64,000 nucleotides of DNA from Tubulanus polymorphus (GCF_964204645.1 NC_134035.1:2356001-2420000); one strand, 5' to 3'; counted from the stretch's first letter, positions 3,969 through 19,861 are shown. Notes: generated by a model not told the origin, from the letters alone. Translations and numbers: made by a program.

Positions 3969-6532
3969 ACTCACTCACTAGTTCTAGTGTATCGATACAC
4001 CCCTCACCAATCTGGCGACGTCGGTCGGTCGGCCGTCTCACTCATCTCTCAATTACCGAAATCAAACATATTATACTCATCATCTCTCAATCTATCGCCG
4101 AATTCAAATACATTTCTCTAGCCTCATGGAATGAACCAACCTCGAAAAAATTTAAATCCACTCATTTTCAATTGAGAAATTAATAAAAAGTTATACTTGT
4201 CCCTTTAGGCCTGTTACGACTGTTACATTGTCAGAAATCACTCAGAGTCCGAGTATCAAATCTTTCAATTTTTGTCCAGGGTGTTCCGAGTTTAAGTCAT
4301 TCACCGGCCCGTTGAGCAGTCAAGTTTTACCATCAATACTAAGCCCATTTCAGTGCTAACCGAACAATACTCTTATCATTCAACAGGTAAGACCAGTATT
4401 TGAATGACATCACCGATGGGCCCAGGTAGGCCTACTTCAGATTTCCTTTCAAATTTAGTAACTTTCATCCGAAGAACTTCGATATTTTTGGACGAGATTT
4501 TGTCGCAGACTTTTGGGATGAAATCTGCGTTTAAATTCTGAACTGACTAGTACGACAACATGAAAATATGATATCATCATTGCTTATGACACGTACTTAG
4601 GAAAATAAACAGATGCCACATACACCCTTAAATGTACAATTCATTCACAGGTCTATTGATTACTACTAGCTCAGAGTCAATAATATACAGGCTAAAAACA
4701 GTGGACTTCAATAACAGGTTCAGTAAAAATGAGGCAAGCACATTTCTGATTGTAGAAGCTTTTTTTTAAAAGCATTTTTGCAAGGAAAAAGTGACACTTT
4801 TCTTTATTATCCAAGACCACAGCCCTCGTCCTAATCCACAGAAGCCCAAGACACTGGTACCTGACAAATCTTGATCTTTAAACTTCTTAATTCTGTATCT
4901 AGTGGGATTTTTGTCATCACTTTATGAAGTTTTTTTTTTCATTCGGTGAAAAGTAAGCACTTCTTACGGCAATTATTTCACTTCTAAGCGCTTCGGATTC
5001 TCGCTATGATTCCCGCGTAGCCGAATACCTGGAAGCTAATTCTACAGGGAATGAATGCTCGTTTCGACATAGTACTCTAAATAACGACTAATGGGGTAAC
5101 ACACACCGAGTTAATGTATAACTACAGTCCAGGAACTAAAACTATGACAAAAGGTTCAAATCGCTAAAAATCGCTGATACCGTCAATAACTAAAAAATAA
5201 GTCCAGATCAAACGTGATATTTGTGTAAGATGAACATGAAGGAAAACCCAAAATAAAACCCAAAATAATTCGACCAAAGTTCTCGATTGAAAGTGTATTT
5301 CGAATCAACGTTTCGACTATAAACTAATATCATTTAGAAAATATCCACGCAAACACTGATTAGATTCATAGAGGGTAATTGAAATAGCCCGATAAGGTAG
5401 GACTATAGGCCGAATGGATAGGCTAACACTGACCTGATTTAACCAACTACAATCCTTATAGGATCGAACATTCCAAGAGAATGTTCTTAACCTACAGCGC
5501 CGTCATTAGGGATCATATTCACTGGCCCCACAATGCCGAACAATGTCAATCTCCTGAAAGCTCATAGGGCCTATTCATTTCATAGAGACAGAATAATGTC
5601 CCAATCAGGGAAATATAAACCAGTTCCAATTTTAGACAAGTCCGTTTTGATAGGGGATAGGGTAAGACCCCTTCTTACCATATCTGACAGACCTTACCCT
5701 GACCCTTACCCTTATCTGCTCCTATCCTCGGAAGAGCATTCGTGAAGTCAAATAGGCCTATGTCAAACAAGAAACTAAGCCCTGTTTAAAAACTGAAAGC
5801 TTCGTGCCAGGCGATGTCTAAACCTACGGAAAAATATTTCTTTTTTACATGAAAGTGTCGTCTTTCTCTCACCACAAAGATGTCACAAAAACTTATCTTC
5901 GCGACAGCTGCACAACTGTGACAAGCACGAGGACGACTCTTATCTCGTTCACGTACCACCGGAACAGAATACCAAGTCCAAAACTGACGACGATAGTATC
6001 GCAAATCGCGGAAATACAATGTGCGATATAAAATGTGAAGGGGCCTGACGCGAAATTCAACCCATTTTCAAACCCCCCTTATATAAATCTACACTTTTTT
6101 AAGCATTATTGACAGAAAGCGAGACGTGGCCAATTCTATGAATCGGTTTAATCAGATCATCTCGGAATTAGACCTTAAGAGAATGGTTATTAGGCCTACA
6201 ATGAGAAAATAGACTTTAGCACAATGTAGTAGACCAGACATTGTGATATCTTTAATTGTAGTAGTTTGCACCAGCAGAATTGAGAGTAATGTGACATTAA
6301 AAACAGTAGTTTGAATAAATTGAAAATGAACTAGACTATTCTGATTCTCAAGGAGCCTATGTCGTAGTTGAGGTCCTTGTTGTTCTCTCTCCCTCTCTCA
6401 AATCATAGTCATACCGAGAACAATTATCAAAAAGATAACATTTGGAACAATTTGAAAACTCGACGGAACATCTGATGTCATAGGCCCACCCGAACCGAAC
6501 CACTGTCAACCACAAACCTCCAAAATACTCAC

Positions 6533-8669: not shown

Positions 8670-11600
8670 TTATACGGTAGTTGCTGGATCGGTAGGCGAT
8701 ACGAACGCGCTGCTGCCATCTATTGGTAACGACGGACGACGGTGCGACGATATCGACGCGAAATCCGACAACGAACTGGAAGACGGACTGCCTCCGCTGT
8801 ATAGTGAACCGCGTCCGGAGCGGTGGCGTTTGCGGTGTTCGGCCTGACGACGTAGCGCGATGTTCAACCGGGTCGCTCCCCACATATATATACAATCGGG
8901 AATCCACTGCAACAACCAATGCTGAAAATACAACGAAGACAAATAAGTCTTTTTTTAGTGAGCGACCAAAACGATATTTGGTCGTCTCAAGAGGCAACTG
9001 AAACCGCTTCTCACATGGTTCCCACAGTTAAATGAATTAGAAATTCCCAGGTTTTTCCCAAGTATTTTCGTGGGTGATTTTTCAATTTTCCCAAATGGAA
9101 ATGAACAGGTATCATCATACTACAGTCAACATTCTATTTTAGTGGTGCCTGGTTGATAAAGGTGATTCTCAAGGGAAACTACTGAAGAAAGTCGCCCTTG
9201 GCAAATGAAATACATGAAATGTAAATGAATTTCCCAAGTATTTCCCTGATGAGGAAATTTTTCAAATTCCCAAATATTTCCAAACTGGGAATTCTTATTT
9301 CAAAATTCCCAAGTTTTTCCCGATTTCCCTGTTCTGTGGGAACCATGTTCTCAAAAACAGATGAGAGTGGTGAGGCCAGAGAAGAACCCTCAACGAAGTC
9401 TATATACCTGTAACGTATGAGGCCAGTAACCGGTGGTTTTTCTCGCCCAGCCGAGAGTTTTCAACGCATGACGAGCGTAAACGCTGGCAGACGGTATGAA
9501 GAAGTTCGTCGTCGACAGCGTTTCGCTGTAGGCGGTCATCCGCGTCGCGACGTAATACGGCGTTAAACACTGCACGATTACTCCGCTGCTTCGATACTCG
9601 TATTCCAAACAATACGACAAATAATCGAGGTATGACTGCAAAAAAATAGTAGAAAACAACAACGAAAATAAGTCCTCGAGACTCAGAAAATCTGAAATTC
9701 TAGACAATTCTGGAAAATTGAAAATACGGTGCCAAATTCAGGTCAGTAATTCAATTTTCCAGATTAAGAATAAATTACTATGTAACTGGGGGATATGGAG
9801 AACTGAAACACACTGACATTCTGGGTTTCAGAAGATTCACAAAATTCTGTTATACTTGGAGCAGAGTTTTTTTTGGAGGAAGCAGGTTAAAGACACTTTT
9901 ACACAAAAAATTAGGAATTAGTAGGCACATTATGACAGGGAAAAGTATGTAGGGCCAATAGACAGTCTAACTGAGATGCATCATTGCAACAGATGAATAT
10001 ACTCGTATAATGTACAAACCTTAGTGGCCGAGTATGCGGTCATTTGAGGGGTCGGTTTTAAACAAGATCCCGATGAAATATTTATCACAGCTCCGCGACC
10101 TCTAAAAAGAAATACCAATGAAACATGATCGTCAAAATCATATTTTAAAGAATTATTTCAACATTAGAACTTAACGTTTGTAAATTGAATCAGAAATAGG
10201 CTACAAATAGGGATTCAAAATAGAGACGAATTCAGCAATGCGGCAACTTATGTCCAATGTCTACTGGGTACTAACACTGAGGATATTGAATTAGAAATAC
10301 ATACATGTACTGATATAATAAGTGGGAATGAAAATAGTTGGACAACTCATCCAAATGAAGACTAAGGTACACTTAGTAAATTGAGTTGGAGATATGCAAT
10401 TCAGGACTAAAAGATAGTGAGAAGTAAACCAAGTTGGACTGTATTTCATTTCCCGTTTCTGTGCTGATTGTATAATAGATCAAATATGTACATAAACGAT
10501 ACCTTTTAACCATCTGTGGCATCACCATGTGAGTCATCTAAAAATCAAGTGCCAAATAGAAAATATATACAAGTTCATCGGAATGAGAATTTTCATTAGT
10601 ATTTTCTAACGAATAATTCACAGCAGTCCCCGATAAGAGAAACACCGAATACTTACGATTGTCGCTGCTATCACATTCACGTAAACTAGCTGCCATAATT
10701 TCTGCAAAAAATATAATTTGAATAATTGTTAAGCGCAATTCAGAGGACTAGGGGCCAGTTACAAAGTCGTGACCTAGGTCCAAAAGTGATCTCAAATCTT
10801 AAGACTGGTCTTAAGTTGTTAGATTGGCTATGGAACTAACTTGGTCTTAGACTGTCTTAAGTCTAAGCCGTGCCTTTGGAAGTGGCCCCTGAAGATGATT
10901 AGTTATGATGAATTTTATTGTCATAATCAACCTGCTGAAAGTGGCCAATCATATTTAGGGGCGGATCCAGAGGCTGATCCTGAAGAGCAAGTCCGATGTC
11001 CAAAAAGGTGAACTCCCACACATAGGGACCAATTATGACGTTCTCCCACTGTTTATCATTGCAGACAAAATGAAAAGGCCACTCAAATTGATGGACTTGT
11101 TCAAGTGTCATAAGTCCCACTGGATCCGCCCCTGCATATAACTAGCTACAGGTCATCGGTACTCACCTCTTCGGGTACATCAAGGAAGTACTGTGGATAT
11201 GAATACATTACTCCTACATTATTAACTAAAAAACAAACACAACTAAGAATCATGTTGTATTACTTAGTAGAGTGATAACAACGACTTTCTTCTCAGTAAT
11301 TATTGTTAGTATATAACATTTCGACAGATGTTAGAAAATTTGACTGGAAATTTACTAATACTAATCCCTAAGGCAGGTTTCAATTGGTCTTTATACCGTT
11401 TCCGGTCTCCACCCATTCTGGAATTCTCTCTCAGTTTTGGCGTGTTTGTTTCACCCAGAATTTTACAGAAGTATTTAACGTAAGTAATCTAGGGTGAACC
11501 AAGCTTCATCGATGCTTACCTAAGATACCTATATTTTTGTCACCTATTGCCTCCCGTATTGTATTGTACACGCTGTGGCCATGAGTAAAATCAACAGGAC

Positions 11601-14600
11601 ACGTAGCGACCTCTATATGAAACTGTTCCTCTGAAATATAAACCGTAAAACTATTAGAGAATTTGTCACTTTTTATCACATATGAAATAAACAGACAGGG
11701 GCGGATCTAGGGGTCTGATTTAGGGAGGGTGACCCTCTCAAATACAGCATATCATTTAATTAGAAAGGCACCCTGAAAGAAAACTCATCAGAGAACATTA
11801 CCTCATTTTTGGAAGTACAGGGTGCAATCTAACCTTTTTAAGCACCAGTTTAATATTTTTAATCTTCCTGTAAAATTTCAAGGCATGTTAACATTTTTTA
11901 CATTTTTAGGGAGGGGGGTGCGCATCCCCCTTGGATCCGCCCCTGACAGACCAAGATATTAGAGAAGCTTAAACTTATAAGCATGTTATACTGAAATGGC
12001 GCTTTTTTAAAGTTTCATAATCTATCAGCCAAAGCTCCGAAGGGAAGCAGAGTAGATTGTAGCATCACTGCGTGTGGCCACGTGGAATAATGGAAGTCTT
12101 ACGTACATGCATCAACTATAGCCCGAACCTCCTTCGACTTTCAAATAGTTCCGGCTCTACCGCAACTTCAGAATTCACTCGAAACATTTTGAAATTGAAA
12201 AGGAACTACAAACACCAGGCATCAGCCATTTGATGAGGAAAATTTCAGAATGTGATGTCCAGGCATCATCTGTATGAAGTGGGTAATTACAAGCAGGGTG
12301 CAGGTTTATAGGAGGTACAGTACATGAAAGGTAGAATCATGCAGAGTCGTATATTCCTTATTATAACCCTACAGATTCAGGTTTGAGAGACAAGAACTTC
12401 ATTATCAACGAAACTTTGATACATTGTAAATCATCGATCTGTACAACTCGCTTAATTTGGATTTTTCTATCGAGATTTCATTTAATTCGGATGAAACATT
12501 TTGGTCCGAATTACCTGGAACTGTGTAAACTATTAGGGCCTACTCATTATTTGGATTTTACTTCATTCAGAGAAGAAATCTAAGTCGTCCGAATTAAGTG
12601 AGCTCTATTGTGTTATTACCGTAGTAACGCAAATTAAGTGATTCGTCGATTCATTCAATCGTGATTCTACATATCGATCGACGTTATTCAGAAAAGCGAA
12701 ACATTTTTTTCCATTTCATCAGATAATTTTTGCCACAGTGCAATAATAATTACCGTATTAGTGAAAATACACGAAAGGAAACATTTCATAAAGCAATCAT
12801 TGATTAGGCGTTTTATAGTGTTTTATGAAAGAGTGTGTGTGCAGCCGAAATATATGGAGCGGTGTCCACGTACAAACTAAACCTACACTGTTCAAGATAC
12901 GATACATATGATTAGGAAGAGATTTTTGGACTAAACATTACAATATTTTTCAATAGACTCCCTGTTAACCTCCCTGATACAATTAACCTGTCTAATCTGG
13001 ATCAATTTACAGTCCGCCTATATAACTTAAATATATAGGTTGCGTATGTTGAAAAATTCAGTGGTCCTCATCGGAGATTTTTTGAAATTCTAGCCTTTTT
13101 CACCGATTCAGTAATTTGCAATTTGAAATTTTCTTTGCAAAAGTATATTGTATACCCATTATTCAACACATCGGGGCGCAATCTTTTTAAACTTTTAAAT
13201 CATCTCCAGTACTTTTGGGTATCAACAAGTGAGCACTGAAAGGGTTAACGTAGATTCTCCCCTAAAACCCGAATATCATATCTTGAACAGTGAGTTTATA
13301 AGATTATTCATATTCGTATCGTCGCTTCGCTTACCAAATTCGTTGGCCAATTTATCAAGTTTGCCTTGGTTGCGACTTAATAGCAGTAAGTTAAGCCCTT
13401 GACTGGCTAATTCGTGGCAGAACGCCCTCCCAATACCCTCGGTACAACCAGTGACAACTTAAACGACACAATGAAATAATCACATATTTAGGGTGACACA
13501 ACATGAGTATCTATATATATATATAAATATATATATGAATCTTTTTAACTGGGCGTTAAACAAACACAGAGCTGAAGACATAAAACATAATATTTTTCTC
13601 AGCAAAAATACTCATTTAATATTAACAAATGAAATAAATTTCTATAACTTTTTTTGCAATTTAGGCCAATATTTACATTTTAAATTATTGGTATTTGGAA
13701 AATTTGCTCTTTCATGCAGCATCACACTTAGGATTCTATGGCTAGTGGATTTGTATGCCACATTTCGATTTCAATCTATAAAGCACAGTTCTTCTATATC
13801 ACTGTTATAAGCTCTATGTCTTTAACTCTGGTTGGATTAACGAGTTAAAAAGGCTAACGACAATTTGACATAGTTTACCGTTATAGCATATAGCGCATGA
13901 ATAGGGTCTGCGGCACTGCTACTGTGGCAAGCAAGGATTTAGCGATAATCCACCAGGTGTCGCAAGTGGCACTCGGTTACCGCACTCCTACATTTCAATT
14001 AAATTCGAATCTAATTTTCTCATCAGTAAATCAATTTTCGGCGTACCATAAACTGAGTGAGAAAGTCAATCTTATATCTACATATTCGATGACTTGTTTG
14101 ATAATATTCGATTTGGAGCTCCAAAAGTTAAGCTCAAATTTTATTGAAAATGAACAAATTTCCACAGCGAATAACTCGGTGCATTGTTGCGCCATCTGGT
14201 GAGTGCCGGTGCCCCATTAAACTATAGGCCTTTTTATGAACCAGCAAAATCGAAATAGATTAGCTATTTAGATTATATAGCCGATTAGTGTCAATTAGCA
14301 TAACCGGGTATGTTGTTTGATAAAAACGCCAGGTAGAAATTATTCAATTATGGCCTACTCAGTAGCGACTTCTACCGAGAACACCATATCGGTTGGATTA
14401 GATAATCGGCATACTTGCTCGCCGAGCGAGTATGCTGAGTATGCTAATCGATTATGATAACCAATGTTCATAAAAATGACGGATTATGACATAATCCATG
14501 CTCATAAAAACGTTTTGCATACTCGAATATACTAATCGAGTGTTCATAAAAAGGCCTTATGTCATTTGCCTTCTTGTTTACGCATAGCCTACCTCTGCAT

Positions 14601-15622
14601 CGCGATGACGTATTTTGAGATATCGTTCACAAATTACTCAACTTGAACTAACATCAAATCATTCTTTCTTTCATTTTGGTTTTGAAAACAATTTGTTTCC
14701 CTTCGACGTTTTCGATTTTTTAAATATGAACATGAACACCATCCGCCGAGATATCTCAAAATATGTCCCCTTTACGCGAGAAGGCAGTTCACACCTCGCG
14801 AGAAAAAAAAACGAAAAAACATTTATTAGGCTATCAAACTTTTACGCATCGACCTTACCGATCTCCTTGGCAACTTTCTCTAGGAAAGGCTGGTCGGGTT
14901 TACTTATCATGACGAGATTAATGCCGTGACTCGCTAGTTCCTGCGCGTACGCCTTTCCGATACCCTCGCTGCATCCGGTAACCACTGACAACAGCAGCAG
15001 CAACGACAACAATCAGATACATAATAAACTTTATCAAGCTTGAATACAGTTAACCTCGTTGATTTCTTCTATCGAGATGGATATGATGACTTAAGCAAGG
15101 TTAACAAACATTTCTAATTAGGCCTTTAGTAATATAATGTACAGTTAGGCCTCTCTTTAGTAGTTATCAGATTTAACTTTTTTATTTGAATTTAGAGCGC
15201 CAACAAATCTTGAGACTTCCGAAAGAAAAAGATTGTTTCTTCTTCAACAAGAACTACAGCTTCAACGAGAACAACAGCTTGCATACTAAACTTAACAAAA
15301 TGCATATCACTGCAAGGTCTTAAAACTAATGGTTAAAATTTAACAGGAGTCTCCTTCATTCAAGGAGAAGAGTCCCACACACAGAGTAGTAGACACACCA
15401 CATGCACGTACCTGCCCATTTTCCAAATTTGTTCTTGAGGTTTATCGGAGCTATTCTGCTGATAAAATGCGCGCCGACAGCGTTCAATATCGCAGCTACA
15501 GCTCCTATAGTCTTCGTGCCGACGTAATATGCCCCGATTGCGGCGAACGTGTCGTTAACCGACGTGAAAACATTGGCTATTTCTTTTGACAGATGCTCGA
15601 AGTTGTCAACGGCGGCGGCCAT
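8670..15622 (-). CDS. HSDL1: Hydroxysteroid dehydrogenase-like protein 1 (HSDL1; 17-beta-HSD3/12 family SDR), about 382 aa, spliced
   Basis: Exons (minus): 15622-15412; 14984-14859 (2a) or 13457-13335 (2b); 11630-11520; 11225-11167; 10701-10657; 10537-10503; 10101-10020; 9635-9408; 8921-8670. All introns GT-AG and phase-consistent. Motifs KFGKWAVVTGCxEGIG, ILVNNVG, GAVINISSG, YSATK, VQCLTPYYVAT, TTGYWPHTLQ and IPDCIYMWGA resemble the HSDL1 subfamily. Confidence 0.9.
9014..9347. mobile_element. MITE in last HSDL1 intron
   Basis: TIR CATGGTTCCCACAG/CTGTGGGAACCATG flanked by the direct repeat TTCTCA on both sides (6-bp TSD). Confidence 0.8.
11696..11945. mobile_element. MITE with CAGGGGCGGATC TIRs; another copy at 10957-11134
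   Basis: TIRs CAGGGGCGGATCTAG/TTGGATCCGCCCCTG, flanking duplication ACAGA(C). Confidence 0.75.
12880..13298. mobile_element. Non-autonomous DNA transposon beside HSDL1 exon 2b
   Basis: TIRs CACTGTTCAAGATACGATA / TATCATATCTTGAACAGTG. Confidence 0.6.
13335..13457 (-). CDS. HSDL1: HSDL1 exon 2b, duplicate Rossmann exon, 123 nt, phase 1-1
   Basis: GTCGTTTAAG| ... |GTAAGC; encodes VVTGCTEGIGRAFCHELASQGLNLLLLSRNQGKLDKLANEF with no stop or frameshift. Confidence 0.85.
14226..14557. mobile_element. MITE between HSDL1 exons 2a and 2b
   Basis: TIRs AGGCCTTTTTATGAAC / GTTCATAAAAAGGCCT. Confidence 0.75.
14859..14984 (-). CDS. HSDL1: HSDL1 exon 2a (Rossmann beta1-alpha1-beta2), 126 nt, phase 1-1
   Basis: GTTGTCAG| ... 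|GTAAGG; encodes VVTGCSEGIGKAYAQELASHGINLVMISKPDQPFLEKVAKEI. Confidence 0.88.
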
Positions 15623-16363
15623 GTTTGAACTGCCCGGCCGACCAACCGGATGGGGATGTGGAAAACTGGCCGGACGGCCGGACCAGGATCAACTGTTTAG
15701 TGACTCCACCGTCACAGTGTTAATCATTGACTAGTATATTGGAACCATTTCGGCATCAATCGCTTTGATTATTCTACGCGAATAAATATCGAAGCCAGGA
15801 TTCGAAAAACTTCTCAATTACCACAGCCAGATCCTGTTTGAAAAAATTAGTTTTTCCAAATGTTTTTATGGTCAAATCACCCACATTTCTACTGAAGAAT
15901 CACACAACTGCTTAACATTTTTCAGTTTTTACCCAATTCTAGTTAGTAACCTAATCGTTGGTGGTAAGGTTTTTATAATCGGATGGGCTTATACCAGCTT
16001 ATTGTGGTTTGTGAAAATATCCGATCGTGAAACTAAACCACAGACAGGTTACTGACTAACCCAATTCATGAGTTTTAGTATCTTTTTGAAAGGTATCCTG
16101 CATGTCCATTAGTTAGTGGTCCATTGGTGTTGTGCTTCAATATTTGGATATCCCATTGTCTCTACTGTAATCATACTGACTAATAACTCTAATCACCAGT
16201 AAAAACAACAAATACAATTTTTTGTAAACCAGTATAATATAACAAAAATGCGTACATTCAAAAAATGATTGACATTAAATACAACTATTTGTATCATTAA
16301 AATTCCACATGAAAGACTTGAGGGTACTGCGCTCAGTGGCGTTTATAAAATATAACAATCTCT

Positions 16364-19861
<3,498 letters not shown>

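Follow-up and report, generated by a model that had tools for sequence, protein, structure and literature searches.

Tandem-duplicated cofactor-binding exons separated by a long spacer in the HSDL1 gene of the nemertean Tubulanus polymorphus

The window analyzed here is a stretch of 64,000 nucleotides (nt) from the nemertean Tubulanus polymorphus (GCF_964204645.1 NC_134035.1:2356001-2420000). It carries a multi-exon gene of the short-chain dehydrogenase/reductase (SDR) family, read on the minus strand of positions 9300 to 15750. The initial annotation of this DNA had named the gene HSDL1 and had proposed that its cofactor-binding exon is present twice, as two mutually exclusive copies called 2a and 2b. 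A representative library was searched with exon 8, which returned P0019, and a full-length search with P0019 led to two T. polymorphus proteins in RefSeq, P0152 (isoform X1, 423 amino acids [aa]) and P0153 (isoform X2, 382 aa), both identical to the exons of the window. Both are named "inactive hydroxysteroid dehydrogenase-like protein 1." Because of this RefSeq identity, because the nearest relatives across phyla also bear the HSDL1 name, and because HSD17B12-type proteins scored lower, the gene is identified by its sequence as the T. polymorphus HSDL1 orthologue rather than another SDR.

All exons lie on the minus strand. Exon 1 (15412-15622, start codon at 15622-15620) encodes an N-terminal helix and residues 1 to 70 of both P0152 and P0153, and it ends with ...KFGKWA plus 1 nt (phase 1). 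It is followed by exon 2a (14859-14984, 126 nt, phase 1-1), which encodes beta1, the TGxxxGxG loop, alphaB, beta2, the loop SKPDQPF, and the start of alphaC and which is found in both RefSeq isoforms. Exon 2b (13335-13457, 123 nt, phase 1-1) encodes a homologous module with the canonical SRNQGKL loop and corresponds to residues 113 to 153 of isoform X1. The intron between them (13458-14858) measures 1401 nt. Exon 3 (11520-11630, phase 1-1) provides the shared acceptor for 2a or 2b and is delimited by the joints 11630>14859 and 11225>11520. Exon 4 (11167-11225), which bears the LVNNVG motif, exon 5 (10657-10701), and exon 6 (10503-10537) were each placed by joints and tblastn, and exon 7 (10020-10101), with the catalytic Ser region and Y-S-A-T-K, was placed by the joint 10101>10503 and by alignment. 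Exon 8 (9408-9635) comprises 76 codons, and exon 9 (8670-8921), the last coding exon, holds the stop codon and matches the C terminus of P0153.

The product is a classical SDR (PF00106) of the HSDL1/HSD17B12-like branch in which the catalytic Ser, the Tyr-x3-Lys pair, and the NNxG motif are all present, as SSGS...YSATK in exon 7 and LVNNVG in exon 4. Tyr260 and Lys264 (X1 numbering) were invariant across a 44-row alignment. With vertebrate HSDL1/HSD17B12 (SDR12C family), it shares the N-terminal helix, TGxxxGIG, NNVG, YxxxK, and the ISR loop after beta2, and its best full-length matches are so named. Judged by these motifs, the gene encodes a classical membrane-anchored SDR with an intact Ser/Tyr-x3-Lys center. 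The label "inactive" of HSDL1 derives from the human and zebrafish proteins, according to the passage of PMC9859523 that cites Meier et al. 2009. In the Tubulanus name, this label is carried over from vertebrate HSDL1; the Tubulanus protein itself retains the catalytic Tyr and Lys.

Next, the two copies of the cofactor exon were compared. Their limits are exactly those of the span 13335-14984 given in the initial annotation, and each other coding exon occurs once between positions 5000 and 17000 of the window, so the cofactor exon alone is doubled, as had been claimed. Both copies are open and of phase 1-1, with GTAAG donors (G/gtaagg and G/gtaagc) and acceptors ending in ...tgtcag/ and ...tttaag/. 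The peptides are identical at 23 of 42 residues with one single-residue gap, and their loops read SRNQGK(L) in 2b and SKPDQPF in 2a, in agreement with the earlier quotation. At the nucleotide level, the identity was 62.6%, and 15 of the 23 identical residues are encoded by differing codons, which bears out the statement that many synonymous codons differ. The two are adjacent homologous exons of near-equal length, with matching phases and their own splice sites, as expected of tandem duplicates. Both matched positions 5 to 44 of PF00106 (adh_short), which span beta1, the Gly-rich loop, alphaB, beta2, and the start of alphaC, and both scored above the gathering threshold. Across the 268-Mb genome, 2a and 2b were mutual best matches (56% identity; the next SDRs reached at most 48%). 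Their alignment score of 117 was 15 standard deviations (SD) above that of shuffled peptides (-20 +/- 9).

The pattern of differences indicated that both copies have been under constraint. The 46 nt differences between 2a and 2b were split 13/7/26 by codon position, and by the Nei-Gojobori method the nonsynonymous divergence (dN) was 0.33, with the synonymous divergence (dS) saturated. When 46 changes were placed at random in simulations, 14 +/- 2 identical residues were expected versus the 23 observed; 23 was reached in 0 of 20,000 trials starting from 2a and in 1 of 20,000 starting from 2b, and only about 25% of the randomly changed copies were free of stop codons. Against outgroups (hemichordate, brachiopod, echinoderm, mammal, arachnid, and coral), 2b showed no significant excess of private changes over 2a (4 to 8 against 4 to 6); 2a was nearer than 2b only in the comparison with molluscs. 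One variant per exon was found in other runs (13432 in 2b and 14935 in 2a), each at a third codon position and read as synonymous. The earlier proposal of an old exon duplication with protein-level constraint on both copies is therefore upheld by the low dN with saturated dS, the third-position bias, and the equal outgroup distance. By these measures, 2b has been coding through most of its history, and a very recent disuse is possible.

That the duplication could be an assembly artefact or a chance resemblance is practically inconceivable, and this explanation was rejected. Contigs from independent runs, including a genomic one, cover both exons and the spacer, the alignment score and the Pfam matches exceed what shuffled peptides or the Pfam threshold would allow for a chance match, and the same architecture was found in four other genomes.

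We then asked which copies are used in transcripts. The evidence consisted of assembled contigs of sequencing runs, which lose rare variants, and 15 of 39 joints were listed. No run listed was recorded as RNA; run X3 was RNA-like by its joints, with CT..AC ends exactly at exon borders. Among the joints listed, X3 contains 14984>15412, which connects exon 1 to 2a, and 11630>14859, which connects 2a directly to exon 3 past 2b. Introns 3 to 6 are also joined in X3, so that the contigs form a chain from exon 1 through 2a and exon 3 to exon 7 without 2b. The contig depth over 13320-13519, which includes 2b, was 0 in X3 and 4 in run X2, the latter being the level of the surrounding intron. No 2b junction was present among the listed joints, which is weak evidence given that assembled contigs were used. 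A further run, X5 (2015, same species label), contributed one 63-nt piece that matches exon 4 (window 11167-11229) at 90 to 95%; its spliced flanks differ from the window, and its source may be a divergent lineage archived under this species name. This piece is uninformative about exon 2.

The RefSeq isoforms gave a second view. Isoform X2 runs from exon 1 through 2a to exon 3 and skips 2b, and isoform X1 contains 2a and 2b in tandem and in frame between exon 1 and exon 3. Isoform X1 is a computed prediction. A product with 2b only was not found in RefSeq. A 71-residue piece of X1 across 2b, searched against 5.8 billion protein clusters, gave a single unrelated match of 91 aa, and residues 113 to 153 of X1 matched only X1 itself in the same clusters; both searches required exact 5-residue words and are weak for that reason. 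In sum, 2a is the default exon and 2b is optional or rarely used; among the catalogued products, 2b occurs only alongside 2a, in the computed model X1. The initial annotation had named joint inclusion of 2a and 2b as an outcome that speaks against exclusivity. Its junction check yielded the exon 1-2a and 2a-exon 3 joints in contigs, and the joint inclusion is catalogued in X1. The idea of mutually exclusive exons therefore survived only in part: it holds for RefSeq isoform pairs of Lineus and of three heterodont bivalves (see below), and it is not supported for Tubulanus, where X3 shows 2a only, X1 holds both copies, and no 2b-only product was found.

To see how this splicing compares with known exclusive pairs, the mechanisms that enforce exclusivity were considered. 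Alpha-tropomyosin exons 2 and 3 form a sterically enforced mutually exclusive pair. When a 5' splice site and a branch point lie less than about 50 nt apart, the two cannot both serve in splicing (PMC7969005). The spacer of 1401 nt is far over this limit; therefore, nothing steric forbids the inclusion of both exons in Tubulanus. Both exon lengths are multiples of three; therefore, double inclusion is not policed by a frame shift followed by nonsense-mediated decay (NMD). Both donors are of the U2-type GTAAG, so that a U2/U12 mismatch is likewise absent. Control by competing RNA structures is possible but was set aside: a scan of 11400-15700 for inverted repeats gave only short arms with 71 to 73% complementarity, about what chance would yield in 4.3 kb of AT-rich DNA, and one pair, between the exon 1 donor region (15403-15428) and 13693-13718, has an 11-nt perfect core, again close to chance in an AT-rich stretch.

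The spacer also carries a miniature inverted-repeat transposable element (MITE) at 14226-14557, with no strand assigned. It is 332 nt long, has perfect 16-nt terminal inverted repeats (AGGCCTTTTTATGAAC), and showed high contig depth. At least 698 candidate copies were found genome-wide, and the 40 copies scored were 97 to 99% identical. Because of this near identity, the insertion in the spacer looks young, and the family looks very recently active. Transposon insertions are able to break the exclusivity of exons (PMC7969005). Other repeats were noted near 2b and in the neighboring introns. A 19-nt inverted repeat (12886-12904 and 13274-13292) is 95% complementary, its arms lie 369 nt apart, and the near arm is 43 nt downstream of the 2b donor. 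At 13120-13319, the contig depth was far above the single-copy level, which probably reflects another small transposon abutting 2b. Inverted repeats beginning with CAGGGGCGGATC occur at 11696-11713 and 11928-11945, and a similar motif lies near 11120-11135; these lie in two introns and may belong to another MITE family.

The same exon was then examined in other animals by tblastn and inspection of the loci and by RefSeq isoform pairs. Lineus longissimus, another nemertean, has the same gene with the same exon tandem-doubled in phase 1-1 (locus L022), each copy being 126 nt. Its two RefSeq isoforms X1 and X2 (XP_064635582.1 and XP_064635584.1), both of 366 aa, differ only at residues 77 to 111. 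Lineus exon II is identical to Tubulanus 2a at 31 of 42 residues, and the two Lineus copies are identical to each other at 25 of 42, with dS saturated. Unlike in Tubulanus, the Lineus spacer is only 37 nt and contains a CTAAC some 16 nt from the donor, and each catalogued Lineus isoform holds exactly one copy. The 2a-like exon stands in second place in Lineus and in first place in Tubulanus.

Among heterodont bivalves, equal-length isoform pairs whose difference is confined to this exon were found in Dreissena polymorpha (spacer, 63 nt), Mercenaria mercenaria (spacer, 68 nt), and Ruditapes philippinarum. One type of bivalve exon has an ISKP... loop and the other has an ISR... loop, and a Logan transcript-derived protein, P0162, contains the bivalve second-type (B-type) exon alone. 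Comparison of Mercenaria with Dreissena shows that this second-type exon has been conserved (dN, 0.22). In the annelid Capitella teleta, an unannotated second copy (exon B; L026, 2060-2182) was found 40 nt downstream of the annotated copy; it is intact and of phase 1-1, with good splice sites (ag/.../gtaaaa), and its best match is Tubulanus 2b, at 24 of 41 residues. The pairs are all alike in having a dN of 0.3 to 0.5 with saturated dS. Because these spacers are short relative to the limit of about 50 nt between 5' splice site and branch point, one-or-the-other splicing is expected in the relatives. Spacers of 37 to 68 nt would explain it in Lineus, Capitella, Dreissena, and Mercenaria; the spacer of the Tubulanus window is the 1401 nt given above. 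A comparable case is OGDH. Its exons 4a and 4b, like the HSDL1 pair, are homologous neighbors in tandem, and the choice between them exchanges a single structural module of the enzyme; their exclusivity is sterically enforced (PMC7969005), the gene and the module differ, and the steric condition is absent in Tubulanus.

A second exon copy was not found in Lingula, Pecten, Mytilus, Ridgeia, a siboglinid-like contig, or Saccoglossus, each of which has one copy at the loci inspected. No duplicated exon was seen in the HSDL1 sequences of vertebrates and other deuterostomes that were inspected. Other forms of duplication were observed within HSDL1. In Mytilus species, RefSeq isoforms of equal length diverge in another exon, the one with the catalytic Ser and Tyr-x3-Lys; in Mytilus trossulus, the two copies (L028, 6758-6841 and 7087-7170) lie about 245 nt apart and read YAATK versus YAATT, the latter without the catalytic Lys. 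An ENA metagenome contig of a siboglinid-like annelid (L031, 6804-7964) contains about a dozen tandem copies of a segment for the exon 5 peptide (KLWQLVHVNIAAATIV), with 73/146-nt spacing, inside HSDL1.

The history of the duplication was addressed with an exon tree of 41 columns. The bivalve second exons formed one clade with 99 to 100% support, nested among mollusc sequences; therefore, this duplication appears to be the bivalves' own, and their second copies differ from the nemertean case in being of independent origin. Exon 2b and Capitella exon B were sisters with a support of 57/0. In the approximately unbiased (AU) test, neither a clade of all nemertean exons (p 0.43) nor a clade of all annelid exons (p 0.36) was rejected. 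Taken together, the sequences support at least two independent duplications of this exon, one of them in heterodont bivalves and at least one other among nemerteans and annelids, and an ancient pair common to nemerteans and annelids is possible. Exon 2b and Capitella exon B are mutual best matches with the same gene order, are both 123 nt long, and share the signature ...SRN..KL..LAN. One may therefore imagine the pair as the remnant of a spiralian alternative-exon system predating the annelid-nemertean split, in which one HSDL1 catalytic body was served by two modules of really different cofactor behavior, 2b and Capitella exon B would be orthologues, and the Tubulanus tandem isoform would mark the loss of the steric lock. 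We regard this scenario as speculative and rather doubtful.

The consequences for cofactor binding were assessed from the residues known to matter. In SDRs, an acidic residue directly after beta2 goes with a preference for NAD(H), and NADP(H) is preferred where the Gly-rich segment or the loop after beta2 carries a basic residue (PMC2792337). The TGxxxGxG motif is present in 2a and in 2b. Exon 2a has the basic residues of GIGK and ...ISK, exon 2b has those of GIGR and ...LSR, and neither has an acidic residue at the NAD-determining position; by this sequence rule, both would be of the NADP(H)-preferring type. Lineus is similar, with SR and NK after beta2, the basic residue being kept and the acidic one absent. 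In Capitella, the annotated exon A has ...VSL after beta2, without a basic residue, and exon B has ...VSR. The initial annotation had noted that the end of beta2 sets the NAD(H)/NADP(H) preference and had suggested that the two exons possibly change cofactor affinity or reaction direction. The idea of a cofactor switch is weakened by the basic residues that both exons have after beta2 (SK and SR) and after the Gly motif (GIGK and GIGR). With a basic residue retained and the acidic one missing in both exons, a switch between NAD and NADP by swapping 2a and 2b is unlikely in Tubulanus; a shift in affinity, kinetics, or surface contacts would be the more plausible effect. The idea of a cofactor switch would be better founded in Capitella, where the copies differ by Leu versus Arg after beta2.

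Exons 2a and 2b differ on alphaB and, conservatively, at core positions of beta2, but most of all in the loop that follows beta2 (SKPDQPF versus SRNQGK). Structural models were also examined. An AlphaFold model of P0152 residues 113 to 423, which contain 2b and the remainder of the protein, displayed a classical SDR fold with a predicted local distance difference test (pLDDT) score of 94 to 98 over 2b (beta1-alphaB-beta2). The top Foldseek matches of this model were NADPH-bound classical SDRs and hydroxysteroid dehydrogenases (E ~1e-16). The model thus shows that 2b is fold competent and can build a Rossmann module with the rest of the protein. In a model of the tandem isoform X1, 2a occupied the Rossmann core with a pLDDT of about 90, and residues 103 to 142 had a pLDDT below 50. 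The alignment behind this model was chimeric, as MAFFT had split the orthologues between the head of 2a and the tail of 2b. Because this chimeric alignment shaped it, the X1 model cannot tell which copy is used.

Our favored explanation, which we hold with roughly even confidence, is that 2b is a facultative homologous exon in Tubulanus, where the steric lock is absent and 2a is the default. The second coding exon, which encodes the whole dinucleotide-binding beta-alpha-beta unit, was duplicated in tandem long ago. In other spiralians, the two copies lie 37 to 68 nt apart, and the upstream donor and the downstream branch point would be incompatible, so that exactly one copy would enter each mRNA. 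In Tubulanus, the spacer would have grown to 1.4 kb, partly through the recent MITE, and the lock would have been lost. Exon 2b, intact and selectively maintained, would be used rarely or only under some conditions and would behave as an in-frame optional exon spliced behind 2a, as X1 models it. It would provide a second cofactor module, distinct from that of 2a chiefly along the surface of alphaB and in the beta2-alphaC loop facing the adenosine 2'-phosphate; the effect may be an adjustment of NADP(H) handling or of partner contacts, with no change of preference from NADP to NAD. Several observations weigh against this explanation. No inspected read or contig joins 2b to anything among the 15 of 39 joints listed, and X1 rests on a computed model of unseen support. 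To our knowledge, there is no precedent for a protein with two tandem beta-alpha-beta units, and residues 103 to 142 of X1 were of low confidence (pLDDT <50), in a model that is not an independent test given its chimeric alignment. The exon order differs between species, with the 2a-like exon first in Tubulanus and second in Lineus, and the exon tree, with its 41 columns, cannot decide whether 2b is orthologous to Capitella exon B or to Lineus exon I. Because of the differing order and the undecided tree, we infer the history of a lost steric lock rather than read it from the exons directly.

Two other explanations were weighed against the optional use of 2b. In one, strict mutual exclusion would apply to Tubulanus as well, in line with the initial annotation: unsampled tissues or stages would produce an mRNA with 2b only, exclusivity would be kept by a mechanism other than spacing, such as RNA structures or splicing factors, and X1 would be a model artefact. 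Homologous pairs annotated as one-or-the-other in Lineus and three bivalves agree with it, as do the constraint on both copies and the contrast between 2b alone, which forms a confident Rossmann core in the model, and the tandem form, which leaves a 40-residue stretch of low confidence. On the other hand, neither a 2b-only protein nor a fragment of one was found in the 5.8 billion protein clusters or RefSeq, and the 1401-nt spacer, the exon lengths divisible by three, the U2-type donors of both exons, and the inverted repeats at chance level offer no means of enforcement. We therefore consider strict exclusivity unlikely, if well worth keeping in view. The remaining explanation takes 2b as a relic: a once alternative exon would have been abandoned, for instance upon expansion of the spacer, and would look intact only through recency, its inclusion now being noise. 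It would account for the lack of X3 contigs on 2b and the intron-level depth there in X2, for the absence of a close 2b-type protein from the databases searched, and for the repeats that flank 2b (the MITE in the spacer and the 19-nt inverted-repeat element 43 nt downstream of the donor); second copies have also evidently disappeared, or failed to arise, in Lingula, Pecten, Mytilus, Ridgeia, and a further siboglinid-like contig. Yet 2b has an open frame and good splice sites, keeps every family-invariant position, and has diverged from outgroups as much as the expressed 2a. Its sole variant is synonymous and one RefSeq model includes it, so that the loss would have to be very recent, and we find this explanation improbable.

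Two further features of the window were observed. Upstream of HSDL1, at 16500-19300 on the minus strand, open frames of a JmjC/cupin-like protein mark a neighboring gene. Within the intron between exons 4 and 5, the interval 10720-10919 had a summed contig depth of about 184,000 in a genomic run, compared with about 35 to 40 elsewhere, along with many joints that go back 34 to 35 positions, a pattern indicative of a short repeat, tandem or dispersed, in extremely high copy number.

The statement that such exons are undescribed in HSDL1 was borne out, as a literature search found nothing on alternative exons of this gene; the exons are already contained in automated RefSeq models, and tandem-duplicated alternative exons as such are already known. 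The comparison also exposed annotation gaps, since the second Capitella exon is missing and Tubulanus X1 is in need of read support. The practical yield is modest, as HSDL1 is without an established substrate and any effect of the swap is conjectural. It is unusual for alternative exons to exchange the entire beta-alpha-beta unit that binds the cofactor in a Rossmann enzyme, and such exons provide a natural experiment on how this module tunes an SDR. The recurrent doubling of this exon, with spacers too short to splice in four genomes, suggests that possessing two versions of the module has repeatedly been advantageous. With its 1.4-kb spacer and its catalogued tandem isoform, Tubulanus is an informative exception, and its HSDL1 gene offers a ready test both of the steric exclusion model and of the effect of a doubled nucleotide-binding unit on the protein.

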